Positions 1-6,983 of a DNA stretch of 11,000 nt are shown here, piece after piece. The notes under the pieces were generated by a model. It did no database searches. It was not told where the DNA came from and saw nothing but the letters and a program-made list of their open reading frames with translations. The position numbers were made by a program, and so were the translations under genes. This DNA is from Zygophlyctis sp. KS116 (taxonomy: Eukaryota > Fungi > Chytridiomycota): positions 1-11,000 of the forward strand of contig BAAFSQ010000315.1 in the NCBI GenBank assembly GCA_054661495.1, read 5' to 3'. Within the stretch, counting starts at the first letter, position 1. Every line of letters starts with the position of its first letter.

Positions 1-163
1 TCATGGATTTGAAGTCGAAAGCGGTTAATAATTAATTAAACTGAATAATAAACAATCGGTCCATTTTTAGTAAATCTAGACTGACTAAGACAATCGTTTG
101 ATTTCATGCCGTTTTTACGCCTCTATTGGCCTGGCCGCATTGCCGATATTCTCTTTCAAAAAA

Positions 164-704
164 ATGATTTCAATGATTACTTTTGCACTTTTGCCTCTCC
201 TCAGCTTAGCCCAGGGCACAACCAATAGCACTGGCTCTACAAACAGTTCCATTGTCTCTCCTGAATGCCAGAAAGCATTACAATCAGTTTCAAGTTCCTG
301 CCAGACTCAAGTAGCGGAATGGACGAGTTTAGCAACGAGTTCTTGTAAAACGATAGATCTATGTACAGCGGATCAGAGAACAAACATTTGTCGAAAGTTC
401 AACAATGAGGTCCTTCCATGGTAAGTTTACAGAAATTAATTCTAGTTTGGATCCTGTTCTAAAAGCTTGCCCCGCAGGAGCAGCAGATTTGGAAGATTCC
501 ATAAAGGCATGTGCCAAATTGGCAGTTGGATCTGGTACTTCCGCCGGGTCTGGTACTTCCACCGGGTCTGGTACTTCCACCGGGTCTGGTACTTCCACCG
601 GACCAGGAACACCTACGGCAGCCTCGACCGACAACGCCAACTCTGGTTTTGCTATTGGAATGGAATTGTCTTTTCTAGGATTACTGGTTTCATTAGTTTT
701 ATAA
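164..704 (+). CDS. Secreted Cys-rich, probably GPI-anchored surface protein, paralog 1 (171 aa; exons 164-420, 446-704)
   Basis: ATG at 164 begins a hydrophobic signal peptide (MISMITFALLPLLSLAQ). Removing the 25-nt intron 421-445 (GTAAGTTTACAGAAATTAATTCTAG) joins ...EVLP-C-LDPVLKAC. The protein has 8 Cys, a GSGTST repeat stalk, then NSG plus a hydrophobic C-terminus (FAIGMELSFLGLLVSLVL) typical of a GPI signal. I do not recognise the family. Confidence 0.85.
528..617 (+). repeat. 18-nt coding tandem repeat GGGTCTGGTACTTCCACC (GSGTST): 4 near-perfect copies at 528-599 plus 1 degenerate copy
   Basis: Seen directly. It encodes GSGTSA-GSGTST-GSGTST-GSGTST-GPGTPT. Confidence 0.95.
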
Positions 705-950
705 GAAATTTAAAACCTCATCGTATCTGAATTAATCTGAGCTGCCCCCAGGTCCAATTTCTTCAGCTAATCAAGCTGGTTGAACGAACCATCTTAAAAT
801 AGATTCCACTGCTGATTCTAAATTAAGATGGATCTTCTATTTATAACTTCCAAAAATAAATATGAAAATGATTTCAATGATTACTATTGCATTATTGCCT
901 CTCCTCAGTTTAGCCCAAGGCACAACAAATAGAACTGGCTCGACAAATAG
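638..950 (+). repeat. Direct repeat, copy A: paralog 1 GPI tail + 157-nt spacer + paralog 2 leader. Copy B is at about 1331-1646.
   Basis: CAACTCTGG starts at 638 and 1331. The stops at 704 and 1397 are offset by 693 nt and the starts at 862 and 1558 by 696 nt. Both spacers carry the identical block TCATCGTATCTGAATTAATCTGAGCTGCCCCCAGGTCCAATTTCTTCAGC. Confidence 0.9.
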
Positions 951-1397
951 CACTAGAAAAACTACTAGTAGCAATCCAACAGCGTTTGTTTTACCTATGA
1001 TAAACATCACAAATACTTATAATTTTTCTCTTGAATGCCGGAAAGCAGTTTTAGCAGCAGATGCAACCTGCTTCAAACAATGGTTTATTATTGGAATGGA
1101 TGCAGTTTCGGGTGCAAAAACGGAGACTATTTTAAAATCAGCCTGTGAAAATCTTCAATGGTAAGTTAGTTCCTAAAATCTTACTCTAGCATTAAGCCTA
1201 TAATGACTTTATGTGTCGGTGTCGATGTTGCAACTGCTGAAAATGCAATGAGCCAAGCCGGTGCAGAATGCTCTAAATTAGGCTATTCAATCGCTACTAG
1301 TACAACAACAGCAGTACCGACAGATAAGGTCAACTCTGGCTATACTTTTGGAATGGAATGGTATATTCTAGGATTGCTGGTTTCATTAGTTTTATAA
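862..1397 (+). CDS. Secreted Cys-rich, probably GPI-anchored surface protein, paralog 2 (divergent core; 168 aa; exons 862-1160, 1190-1397)
   Basis: The signal peptide is nearly the same as in paralogs 1 and 3. The 29-nt intron 1161-1189 (GTAAGT...CTCTAG) splits a Cys codon at the same position and phase as in the paralogs, giving ENLQ-C-IKPIMTLC. It has 6 Cys with the shared C-x10-C and C-x7-C spacings, and the tail NSGYTFGMEWYILGLLVSLVL. Confidence 0.85.
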
Positions 1398-1646
1398 GAA
1401 ATTTAAAAACTCATCGTATCTGAATTAATCTGAGCTGCCCCCAGGTCCAATTTCTTCAGCAAATCACGCTGATTGCAATCAACTGACAATCTTAAAATAG
1501 ATTGTGGCGCTGATTCAAATAAAGATGGATATTCTATTTATAGCTTCCAAAAAAAATATGAAAATGATTTCAATGATTACTTTTGCACTTTTGCCTCTCC
1601 TCAGTTTAGCCCAAGGCACAACCAATAGCACTGGCTCTACAAACAG
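1331..1646 (+). repeat. Direct repeat, copy B: paralog 2 GPI tail + 160-nt spacer + paralog 3 leader
   Basis: Aligns with 638-950 with few substitutions and a small indel. Confidence 0.9.
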
Positions 1647-2005
1647 TTCCGATGTCTCTCCTGAATGCCAGAAAGCATTACAATCAGTTTCAAGTTCCTG
1701 CCAGACTCAAGTAGCGGATTGGACGAGTTTAGCAACGAGTTCTTGTAAAACGATAGATCTATGTACAGCGGATCAGAGAAAAAACATTTGTCAAAAGTTC
1801 AAGAATGAGGTCCTCCCATGGTAAGTTTACAGAAATTAATTGTAGTGTGGAGCCCGTTATGAAAGCTTGCCCCGCAGGAGCATCAGAATTGGAAGGCACC
1901 GAAAAGGCATGCGCTGCATATTCGAATGCATCTAGCAAGAACTATTCTGGACTTACCATGCAATTGATGTTTTCTATTTTAGCATTTTTATTTTTCTTGA
2001 ATTGA
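1558..2005 (+). CDS. Secreted Cys-rich, probably GPI-anchored surface protein, paralog 3 (140 aa; exons 1558-1820, 1846-2005)
   Basis: 1564-1915 aligns without gaps to 164-515 at an offset of exactly 1400 nt. It has a 25-nt intron at 1821-1845 and 8 Cys. There is no repeat stalk, and the hydrophobic tail is distinct (LTMQLMFSILAFLFFLN). Confidence 0.85.
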
Positions 2006-4344: not shown

Positions 4345-5331
4345 TTATAAAAAGAATTTCCTTCGAGAAGTCTCCAAATCTTGCTTATGAATCCATTCAT
4401 ACTCTGCCGAGGGAGAATCACCCATAAAAACGCCCTTTTGAATCCACTTGAGTTTTAGAGTAAATCTTGGCCCTAGTTCTTGCAAATCAACTTTTTCCTG
4501 ATTTCTAAAAATATACCGATGTCTTCTAAAGAATATAAAATCTCTTTGATTATGAAATGTGACAGCTTGTCTTCTTTGAAATTCAGGAACATGCGGGAAA
4601 AGCGACGCCACCATTCTACCAACAGAATGACCTAATCTAGTAGAAAAATTGTTCAAGATCAACTCTGGGGGAGAATCACATCCATTACCATGACCTCTTA
4701 TTTGCTTATTTAATTTAATACTTGAAAGTTTAAAGTATGCTGTGGGACCATTTGGTAAATGACATATTGTCAACCCATCTAATCGCTTTAAACCATTTAT
4801 ACTTACCAATAACCTTTTTATTTTCATGCAGGATCATTATATCTGTGAAGCCCTTGTTAATGCAAATATCAGCAATATTTAAAAGACTGAATTGCGGCTT
4901 TCGTTTCACAAATGTTGATCCTGGAAAAATATCACAAAATTCCTTTACAAAATCATAAACCTTCTAACAATAAGAAAAGATAAGATACCCCTGGAACTCT
5001 TTGAGTTGTTGTAATTAGAATCTTTGGATCAGCAGATCCTTGAAAATAATCCTTGAATTCATCTTCCTCTTCCTGTGCAATGATCTAATGCATTAGCCTA
5101 AACAATGCATACTTCTTCATCATCAGCGACAAGGTTGTCATCAGCTTCTCTCTTGTTTTCTAGAGTCTTTGGGACATTTTTCTCTAATCGCTGCTTCTTC
5201 AATTCAGGATCATTGGCTTCCGATCGCTTGATCTCTTTTCTTCTGGCTAATTTAGCTCTTGCGGCCTCGGATTTCAGCTTGTAAAAAACAGCAGCTCTCT
5301 TTATTTTATTAGAAATCTTTAGATCTTTCAT
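4345..5331 (-). CDS. RPF1: Ribosome production factor 1, Brix domain (301 aa; exons 5331-5113, 5084-4989, 4963-4807, 4778-4345)
   Basis: The N-terminus ISNKIKR...[10 protein letters not shown] is Rpf1-like. Also present: [61 protein letters not shown] and a C-terminal SRRKFFL. Introns 5085-5112 (28 nt), 4964-4988 (25 nt) and 4779-4806 (28 nt) are all GT-AG and restore frame. Confidence 0.95.
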
Positions 5332-6764
5332 TCGCTGGAATTTCTAACCCAACCCTCGACAAAAATTGACGCCTTTAGAAACTTGCGGGAAGAATATTTT
5401 TTAAATAGAGATTCATACTTGGATGGCTTTGACACATTTTCAAGAATTAAATCTACAGTGTCTTGCATTTGAGAAACTTCATATCCAGAGTAATGTACAA
5501 GATTATTGTCCTATGATTAAAATTAAAATTTTACCCATTCACCACGATCTAACATTTGTCGGGCCAAGTACAATCCAGACGCTGCAATCAAGGATGGCGT
5601 CTTGTCAAGGAATCGATTATCTATAAGTGATGCCTCCATCAAGTACTTTGCCAAAGTTCTAGTTTGATGATCGTAATTTTCAGCTTTAGAGACTCGACGC
5701 AAAAAAGACATTGGAGATGGGTATTGAAGAGAAAAATCTAAAACTTGGAGTATATATCTTTCTGCTTTAAGAACTTCTTCTTCAGTATATCCTCCATCAG
5801 CCATATAAATGAAATTAGAAAGAGAAGGAGTCAAGATTTCTTCATATTTTGAGGCAATAAACATTGCTGCAACTCCCACCAATTGAAGTTTAACAAGAGA
5901 TACAACTCGAAGAGATAAAAATCTGTCAATAATATTTACAGTAAGGTAAAGAGTTTCCGGCAATAAATGAAATTTGTGATGAACTTCAATCAACCAATCT
6001 ACAAGAATGCTTCTCATACTCCATTGCAAGTCTTTTTGATCATCAATGTAATTAGGATCAGGCATTGTCGTCAACTCTAATTTCTTCATGTACTCAAAGA
6101 TTTCAACAACATATTCAGAAACCATACTTGGATCTCCAGAGTCATCTGCATCCAAATCATCCCACTCAGAAGTTTTCACCTTTTTTGTAGAATGTTCTTC
6201 AGCCTCTTCATTATCACAAGAGTCAATCATTGCAGGATGTCTTACTCGAGCCTTGTTAACTTTAATAACTTTGGGCTCATCATCTTTAACCACCAACTTT
6301 TTAGTGACTTTAGCCTTTGGAGGTTGAATACAGCTCTTTTCATTGCTATTCTTTACTTTTTCTTGTAAAACTGCCTTCTTGTCTACAGTCTCATTTATAC
6401 TGGATTTACGAGTTTTTGCAGTCACACGTCCCTTTATCTCCTTGTTGTTTGTCTAGAATGAGATTTACTAAAGACGCGCTCATCACGTCTGGCAACACTT
6501 ACCTGATTCTGTTGTACATTACTAACATCTCCTAATGCAGATCTCTTCTTTGATGGCAACACTTCCTTTTTAGCAATTGGCTTCACTTTACTGGACAATG
6601 TCGCGTTCTTTGTCAATAGTACTTTAGACATTCCCTTGTTTTCTTCGTTTGAGTTATTCTTCTTCAATCCTGTTGGTGCATTGGAACTTGCAGCAGCTAA
6701 TCTAGAACGCGTTTGAATCTAGTATTCGTTTAACCTTTTAGAAAAGACTTACTTGCGAAAACAT
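5328..6764 (-). CDS. G2/M B-type cyclin, Cdc13/Clb/NimE-like (442 aa; exons 6764-6753, 6718-6503, 6452-5535, 5510-5328)
   Basis: It has a destruction box RSALGDVSN and a cyclin box MRSILVDWLIEVH...LPETLYLTVNIIDRFL...LQLVGVAAMFIASKYEE. The last exon, absent from the ORF track, reads DNNLVHYSGY...[26 protein letters not shown], the typical fungal cyclin B C-terminus. Introns are 6719-6752 (34 nt), 6453-6502 (50 nt) and 5511-5534 (24 nt). The 12-nt first exon (MFSQ) is the least certain part. Confidence 0.93.
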
Positions 6765-6983
6765 ATACTTTTTGGTTTAAAGTTTATTTAAATATTATAT
6801 TAGTAAAGAAAAGTAAGAGACAATCTCTAACACTTGTTCTAAAACTTTTAAAGAGCGAGTCCGATTATTCCCCGGGCTTTGAGTTAATTTCCCCGTGGCA
6901 CCTTCAGACTCTAGTTCCGTGCACCCTAATACAACAAAACAGAGAGATCTATCCCAGATCCGATCTTCCTTTTTTAATCATGA

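Follow-up and report, generated by a model that had tools for sequence, protein, structure and literature searches.

A conserved ATGA stop/start overlap between a B-type cyclin gene and RPF1 in a compact chytrid-like genome

Introduction

How are two spliced, essential nuclear genes expressed when the stop codon of the first shares nucleotides with the start codon of the second? Such an overlap is rare, and one lies between a B-type cyclin gene and RPF1, which encodes a 60S biogenesis factor, in an 11,000-nt stretch of the Zygophlyctis sp. KS116 assembly (contig BAAFSQ010000315.1; hereafter, the window). A sequence-only reading of the window had offered two explanations: an operon-style dicistronic mRNA coupling the two products, or an RPF1 promoter and leader embedded in the cyclin coding sequence together with a cyclin 3' end running into RPF1. 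The features on which the present analysis rests are collected in Table 1.

Table 1. Features of the cyclin/RPF1 locus, in window coordinates
Feature	Position	Strand	Description or basis
RPF1, Brix-family 60S biogenesis factor, 301 aa	4345..5331	-	Pfam Brix, named homologues, open frame
T6 run	5283..5288	-	RPF1 Val-Phe codons, 40-45 nt past cyclin stop; candidate U-rich 3'-end element
Two overlapping AATAAA hexamers	5300..5310	-	RPF1 codons 7-11, 18-28 nt past cyclin stop; candidate cyclin poly(A) signal
ATGA junction	5328..5331	-	RPF1 start codon 5331-5329 overlaps cyclin stop codon 5330-5328; distance -4
B-type (G2/M) cyclin, 442 aa	5328..6764	-	Pfam Cyclin_N and Cyclin_C, chytrid matches, open frame
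TC(C/T)CGCAAG word	5382..5390	-	spans Ser-Arg-Lys of the cyclin, at -59 to -51 from the RPF1 ATG; candidate RPF1 cis-element embedded in the cyclin
Last cyclin intron, 24 nt	5511..5534	-	removed in RNA contigs X1 and X3 and in relatives' contigs L007/L008
Conserved non-coding block 5' of cyclin	6790..6895	-	relatives' alignment; holds intergenic-enriched word TCGGAC (6864)

Materials and methods

Relatives were drawn from ENA, JGI and Logan assemblies and comprise six sequence types, 79-89% identical around the junction. Gene spacing was taken from a self-trained gene finder, trained on 200 kb of the genome (12.7 Mb, 1175 contigs) plus the window (211 kb, about 120 genes), in which overlaps down to -31 were allowed and received no bonus. 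For RPF1, the naturally spliced contig L007 served as the full-length query, and the other spliced models were searched exon by exon.

Results

The ATGA overlap is genuine

The upstream gene carries Cyclin_N and Cyclin_C, its best named matches are chytrid G2/mitotic cyclins (78-79%), and its four exons (6764-6753, 6718-6503, 6452-5535 and 5510-5328, minus strand), separated by three introns, join into an open model. The last exon had been read as 60 codons followed by TGA, which is confirmed, and it completes the Cyclin_C domain, matching positions 66-117 of the 119 of the Pfam model and continuing positions 1-64 matched by the previous exon. The short intron before it runs from GT to AG, is absent from the RNA contigs of two independent studies, and interrupts the cyclin at a protein position that is also interrupted in Dinochytrium and Gorgonomyces. 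In the alignment, this cyclin ends 6 residues past the last conserved Trp, and the acidic tail of 20-40 aa found in its homologues is missing.

The downstream gene combines a Brix domain with the RPF1 N-terminal extension, matches named Ribosome production factor 1 proteins (about 60%), and has four exons (5331-5113, 5084-4989, 4963-4807 and 4778-4345, minus strand) and three introns, of which 4806-4779 is removed in RNA contig X1. In a quick tree of RPF1, the lineage sits on a long branch, with no supported position. [quoted passage not shown]

Between the two genes, the 4-nt overlap leaves zero intergenic DNA, and the in-frame TAG five codons 5' of the RPF1 ATG is present. This TAG closes the frame to an RPF1 start further upstream. 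A start further downstream is likewise rejected, since the homologues begin at the same site; the Met aligns with the N-termini of ten fungal homologues, so that the N-terminus is indeed the usual one. The cyclin and RPF1 are read in different frames, and in that of the cyclin a further stop follows two codons past the first. An alternative cyclin 3' splice form or an intron across the junction can be set aside: no GT-AG candidate pair spans it, and the RNA contigs show none. The gene finder, which had no incentive to overlap genes, recovered the -4 junction by itself, both in the window and in L005, L009, L010 and L011. The junction anatomy described by the sequence-only reading was therefore correct in all points checked.

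That reading had also asked whether relatives keep the overlap, and the ATGA is retained in 6/6 sequence types. In one lineage, two extra residues follow directly after the RPF1 Met and the -4 overlap is still kept, and an 83-aa prediction (P0252) shows the same junction with seven additional residues, its ATG being at the usual place. The neighbouring spacers vary among the same relatives, from 219 to 407 nt for DAO-cyclin and from 24 to 103 nt for SAR1-SLU7. Because the same junction is found in six sequence types that are 79-89% identical, the overlap is due neither to chance nor to an assembly deletion. An assembly or annotation artefact, for which the fragmentation of the genome assembly could be invoked, has a negligible probability, as the junction recurs in independent ENA, JGI and Logan assemblies of these types and in spliced contigs. 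The overlap is genuine, conserved and derived. Metagenome scans found no closer relatives carrying it; the RNA runs that hold parts of this stretch are freshwater or aquatic.

An old neighbourhood and a lineage-specific abutment

In Gorgonomyces, the genes for DAO, cyclin, SLU7, RPF1 and SAR1 lie within 7 kb, and in Dinochytrium and Polychytrium cyclin and RPF1 are within 3 kb of each other. Gene order and orientation differ in each of the three, and RPF1 has its own upstream spacer of 377-709 nt. In Syncephalis no cyclin was found within 6 kb. Cyclin B and RPF1 are thus neighbours in these three distant chytrids (L112, L113 and L116); SAR1 accompanies them in two, and one also has SLU7, DAO and an LRR gene, the order being shuffled. 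Because three named chytrids keep both genes nearby yet separate, the junction is derived: the cyclin-RPF1 microsynteny is old and the abutment specific to this lineage. The abutment may have originated by local rearrangement and deletion, in an order of events that three outgroups do not fix.

Gene packing in the genome

Introns in this genome are mostly 24-30 nt long. In the ab initio models of the sampled 211 kb, tandem stop-to-ATG gaps have a median of about 90 nt with a tail of -4 (cyclin/RPF1), -1, +1, +4, +7, +10, +10 and +12, convergent gaps have a median of about 40 nt and begin at 6 nt, divergent gaps begin at 23 nt, and many are below 30 nt. Minimal spacers therefore occur in all orientations, as in compacted genomes with overlapping transcription and, because the predicted gaps are so tiny in each of them, signals must often lie in neighbouring genes. 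The close-packed partners are functionally unrelated.

Excluding cyclin/RPF1, an overlap is seen in 1 of about 63 tandem pairs (95% interval 0.04-8.5%), at a rate per offset equal to that of the +1 to +12 gaps, and an extrapolation would give tens of overlapping pairs genome-wide. The genome-wide count of same-strand distances proposed by the sequence-only reading was made on this sample of about 200 kb, where no bacterial-type spike at -1 or -4 is visible among 63 pairs, a sample too small to exclude one. The single further overlap is that of the COG4 stop with a histone deacetylase start, as TAATG (L027:4409-4413, plus strand; -1), with Pfam support on both sides and ab initio starts. Also in L027, the NMD3 stop lies 1 nt from the start of a glycosyltransferase-like gene (L027:7166-7170, minus strand; +1, ab initio start). 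A second ATGA (L012:6798-6929 in C1, minus strand) was not counted, as the stop of a helicase-domain gene overlaps there only a 43-codon frame without a Pfam match; this frame precedes a diacylglycerol-kinase-domain gene. Elsewhere in the window, a tandem array of small secreted, Cys-rich, GPI-type proteins (98-2005, plus strand) differs in copy number in the near-identical L005 and is missing from L009 and L010, where an RFC subunit directly follows SAR1. An Rfam search of the window gave no non-coding RNA match of note.

Candidate 3'-end signals within RPF1

Past the cyclin stop, AATAAA copies at +18 and +23 and the T6 run at +40 all fall within RPF1 codons 7-16. At least one AATAAA copy follows the stop in all six lineages, L007 and L011 each retaining a different one, and the T6 run is invariant in the six. 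Judging from its distribution, AATAAA behaves as a poly(A) word in this genome: coding DNA holds 65 copies against 112 expected under synonymous shuffling (0.58 of expectation), and the hexamer occurs in 11% of post-stop windows versus 1.5% of internal coding windows (p about 1e-4). T6 is likewise at 0.6 of expectation in coding DNA, compared with 0.94-1.0 for four similar A/T hexamers, and T5 runs peak 15-45 nt past stops in the genome sample. The succession of AATAAA and T5 is found in 1/2161 internal coding windows, and after the cyclin stop in all lineages.

The Asn-Lys pair of the RPF1 N-terminus is conserved in all fungal RPF1 compared, and the chance of obtaining AATAAA and T5 from the RPF1 peptide under the codon usage is about 0.19 per lineage, the lineages being related and not independent. 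In the genome sample, the other close-packed pairs do not show this signature of AATAAA and T-run. AATAAA and T6 within RPF1 may constitute the cyclin 3'-end signal.

Candidate 5' signals within the cyclin

Among 61 conserved cyclin sites with a rare codon in some lineage, four are invariant in five lineages: codons 7 and 42, and the adjacent TCC-CGC (7% and 5% of their codon families), which lies 59-54 nt 5' of the RPF1 ATG. In the sixth lineage, TCC is replaced by TCT and CGC AAG is retained. The resulting TC(C/T)CGCAAG word is not enriched between genes in the genome sample; it could act as a promoter element, belong to a weak hairpin, or be there by chance. The main promoter words are absent upstream of RPF1, and a broad synonymous constraint in the last cyclin exon, looked for across the relatives, was not found (z about 0). 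Two further candidates were set aside: the telo-box-like AGGGTT at 5356-5351, as a repeat 5' of a single gene accounts for part of its enrichment between genes, and the RRPE-like AAAATTT in the last cyclin intron, as other introns also retain short words. In L014, a short repeat containing AGGGTT occurs five times 5' of eIF1 (SUI1), upstream of position 20745 in C1 (plus strand).

The invariant rare codons 7 and 42 of the cyclin both give ACGCG, whose density in intergenic DNA is about 11-fold that in coding DNA, and for this reason the genome seems to embed promoter words in coding DNA. Three MCB/E2F-like CGCG words lie 3' of the cyclin start on the minus strand, two in coding DNA by way of invariant rare codons (6712-6708 and 6606-6602) and one conserved within the 50-nt second intron (6479-6473); they are candidate embedded cell-cycle elements. 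Between genes (C1-C4, 1-50000 each), ATCGGAC/GTCCGA and AAACGCG reach about 15-25-fold over expectation as 7-mers and are likely general promoter elements of the lineage. Upstream of the cyclin, the non-coding block, which is conserved in all relatives and in which RNA contig L007 begins, is the likely cyclin promoter and 5' leader.

The context of the RPF1 start is poor for scanning, with C at -3 in 5/6 lineages and G at -2, where the genome consensus is A. An out-of-frame AUG lies at -85 from the RPF1 ATG, and none is closer.

RNA contigs across the junction

Contigs L007 and L008, from public runs of a relative, start 71 or 18 nt before the cyclin ATG, span both ORFs and run nearly to the end of RPF1. 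They are taken as RNA-derived because all introns of both genes are absent from them, and the spliced contigs show that both genes are transcribed and spliced. These spanning contigs do not prove the existence of one molecule, because two transcripts overlapping by at least 31 nt would assemble alike, and the RNA contigs of the window itself (X1 and X3) stop short of covering the junction. Evidence on transcript ends comes from contigs only, and we infer the transcript starts and poly(A) sites from the sequence.

Discussion

Two overlapping transcripts or one

Taken together, the two genes are probably independent, overlapping transcription units, with the RPF1 promoter and leader in the cyclin and the cyclin 3' end in RPF1. 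In favour of this explanation, AATAAA is avoided in coding DNA, yet follows the cyclin stop in all lineages; the promoter words embedded in coding DNA, the tiny gaps in every orientation and the unrelated functions of close-packed partners also fit it. Local rearrangement and deletion in a compact lineage would have removed all spacer DNA. The cyclin mRNA would pass its own stop and be cleaved and polyadenylated within the first 20-30 RPF1 codons, at AATAAA and the T-run, while RPF1 would have a promoter of its own, lying within the final intron or exon of the cyclin. Its leader would be shorter than about 85 nt, given the out-of-frame AUG at -85, and its translation would begin by ordinary cap-dependent initiation. 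The RPF1 transcript would ignore AATAAA because this signal adjoins its 5' end, and the -4 state would persist, given that an insertion or deletion there would disrupt one of the frames. As a by-product, some read-through RNA with two ORFs would probably arise. The poor context of the RPF1 start, the lack of a broad synonymous constraint, the absence of the main promoter words upstream of RPF1 and the contigs spanning both ORFs count against overlapping units, as do the chance of about 0.19 that the RPF1 peptide yields AATAAA and T5 and the lack of this signature in the other close-packed pairs.

The same spanning contigs would be expected if RPF1 were translated from an obligate dicistronic mRNA made from the cyclin promoter, with ribosomes that end at the UGA reinitiating at the overlapping AUG, so that RPF1 output would be coupled to cyclin translation. 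We consider this unlikely. The exact -4 geometry in six lineages, including the type with the two-residue insertion, while the neighbouring spacers vary, does fit such a coupling, as do the poor RPF1 start context and the second pair, COG4/histone deacetylase, at -1; however, two frames would freeze an overlap even without coupling, and the sampled pairs show no spike at -1 or -4. In the last 60 nt, a weak hairpin is invariant (z -0.5 to -3.1 relative to synonymous shuffling) and would fit reinitiation, but the folding z of other windows in the same cyclin reaches -2.4, 0/21 predicted pairs covary, the consensus hairpin has -7 kcal/mol, and in five lineages no UGGGA core was found within 100 nt. 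Such a transcript would, moreover, be cut by the poly(A)-type signal that immediately follows the cyclin stop. Exon junctions and a long 3' stretch past the stop are a textbook cause of nonsense-mediated decay (NMD), which may hold in chytrids as well. An mRNA with both ORFs would have three exon junctions and 0.9 kb past the cyclin stop. The genome has UPF1, UPF2 and Mago genes, alongside DENR, RLI-domain and eIF1 genes; the NMD, DENR and RLI-domain genes speak against coupling, whereas the failure to detect Pre-PUA (Tma20/eIF2D) and UPF3 in an exon-wise search of the incomplete assembly would point the other way. Coupling would also tie a periodic cyclin to a growth factor with which it shares no stoichiometry, and the coupling reported in cells is inefficient (about 82-fold lower for CASQ2; PMC5972666), which is poor for an essential factor. 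That the lineage should translate tens to hundreds of essential nuclear genes, including RPF1, by virus-like reinitiation on spliced dicistronic mRNAs, without TURBS and despite its NMD genes, is similarly doubtful. Of the two explanations offered by the sequence-only reading, the sequence thus leans to that of embedded signals, operon-style coupling gaining no positive support beyond spanning contigs that do not discriminate between them.

A mixed mode, in which an RPF1 mRNA from the internal promoter gives most of the protein and incomplete poly(A) use yields a two-ORF isoform from which reinitiation adds a regulated share of RPF1, would accommodate the embedded signals and the spanning contigs together. 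In Encephalitozoon, AAUAAA is used stochastically and read-through has been documented (PMC2803860), and partly polycistronic loci are known in algae and fungi (PMC7896298), but the reinitiation is hypothetical here, and the data at hand do not separate the mixed mode from overlapping units; we regard it as rather improbable. Very improbable, too, are leaky scanning, trans-splicing, an IRES, and a fusion of the cyclin with RPF1 through a frameshift, read-through or an intron at the junction. Leaky scanning explains algal bicistrons (PMC7896298), but it is excluded here because 30 AUGs precede the RPF1 AUG on the spliced contigs, with an upstream ORF of 434-442 codons. Micro-introns are abundant in this genome, but none is removed at the junction in RNA contigs; a fusion is opposed by the differing frames and by the second closure of the cyclin frame just past its stop, and the lack of a spacer leaves neither a splice acceptor nor a structured spacer for trans-splicing or an IRES.

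Comparison with known systems

The junction most likely follows the mode of compact microsporidia, whose overlapping transcripts begin within the gene upstream or finish within the one downstream (PMC3629993). In Encephalitozoon cuniculi and Antonospora locustae, AAUAAA is the 3' signal, and for the few truly overlapping genes the signals lie inside adjacent coding sequences (PMC2803860, PMC3629993). Minimal spacers and transcripts overlapping their neighbours, as suggested here without mapped ends, are common to both. In contrast to microsporidia, the present genome is chytrid-like and intron-rich (12.7 Mb), the frames overlap at stop and start, and the junction is conserved over six lineages; in E. 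cuniculi, stop/start frame overlaps are very rare, with 9 cases after re-annotation.

Termination-reinitiation at AUGA or UAAUG is known from victoriviruses, hypoviruses, caliciviruses and influenza B, and from the rare cellular cases GAD and CASQ2, with a UGGGA motif defining the calicivirus and influenza B elements (PMC5972666). Since fungi can reinitiate after long ORFs, as with victoriviruses (PMC5972666) and in selected yeast (PMC11952965), coupling is mechanistically possible. The present junction shares with these systems a long upstream ORF whose stop overlaps the downstream AUG, as in TURBS, but differs in having spliced nuclear genes and in lacking UGGGA, a covarying upstream structure and an acidic run at the C-terminus. 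Closely spaced same-strand genes with conserved pairing are also seen in the polycistronic nuclear loci of green algae and Plicaturopsis crispa (PMC7896298). However, the algal upstream ORFs are short and bypassed by leaky scanning (PMC7896298), whereas here the upstream ORF has 442 codons and no sequence separates the two ORFs. Because defining features of each are lacking, the junction is assigned neither to TURBS nor to leaky-scanning systems. The ATGA/TGATG translational coupling of bacteria and archaea (PMC6728339) has the identical -4 geometry, but the genes here are spliced, eukaryotic and unrelated in function, and no spike of such distances accompanies them in the sampled pairs. Within the limits of the library searched, no paper on such junctions in chytrids was found.

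Under either reading, gene finders that forbid overlaps will mis-annotate this lineage. If the two genes are overlapping transcription units, which is the likely reading, the locus would be a case of dual coding, in which one essential gene conceals a promoter and the next a poly(A) signal, and its host would be an intron-rich fungus rather than a reduced intracellular parasite. It would also pose a testable question: how can one transcript use a poly(A) signal that another passes over? If, instead, coupling were true, the junction would be a natural cellular example of reinitiation after a long ORF, a process described to date chiefly in viruses.
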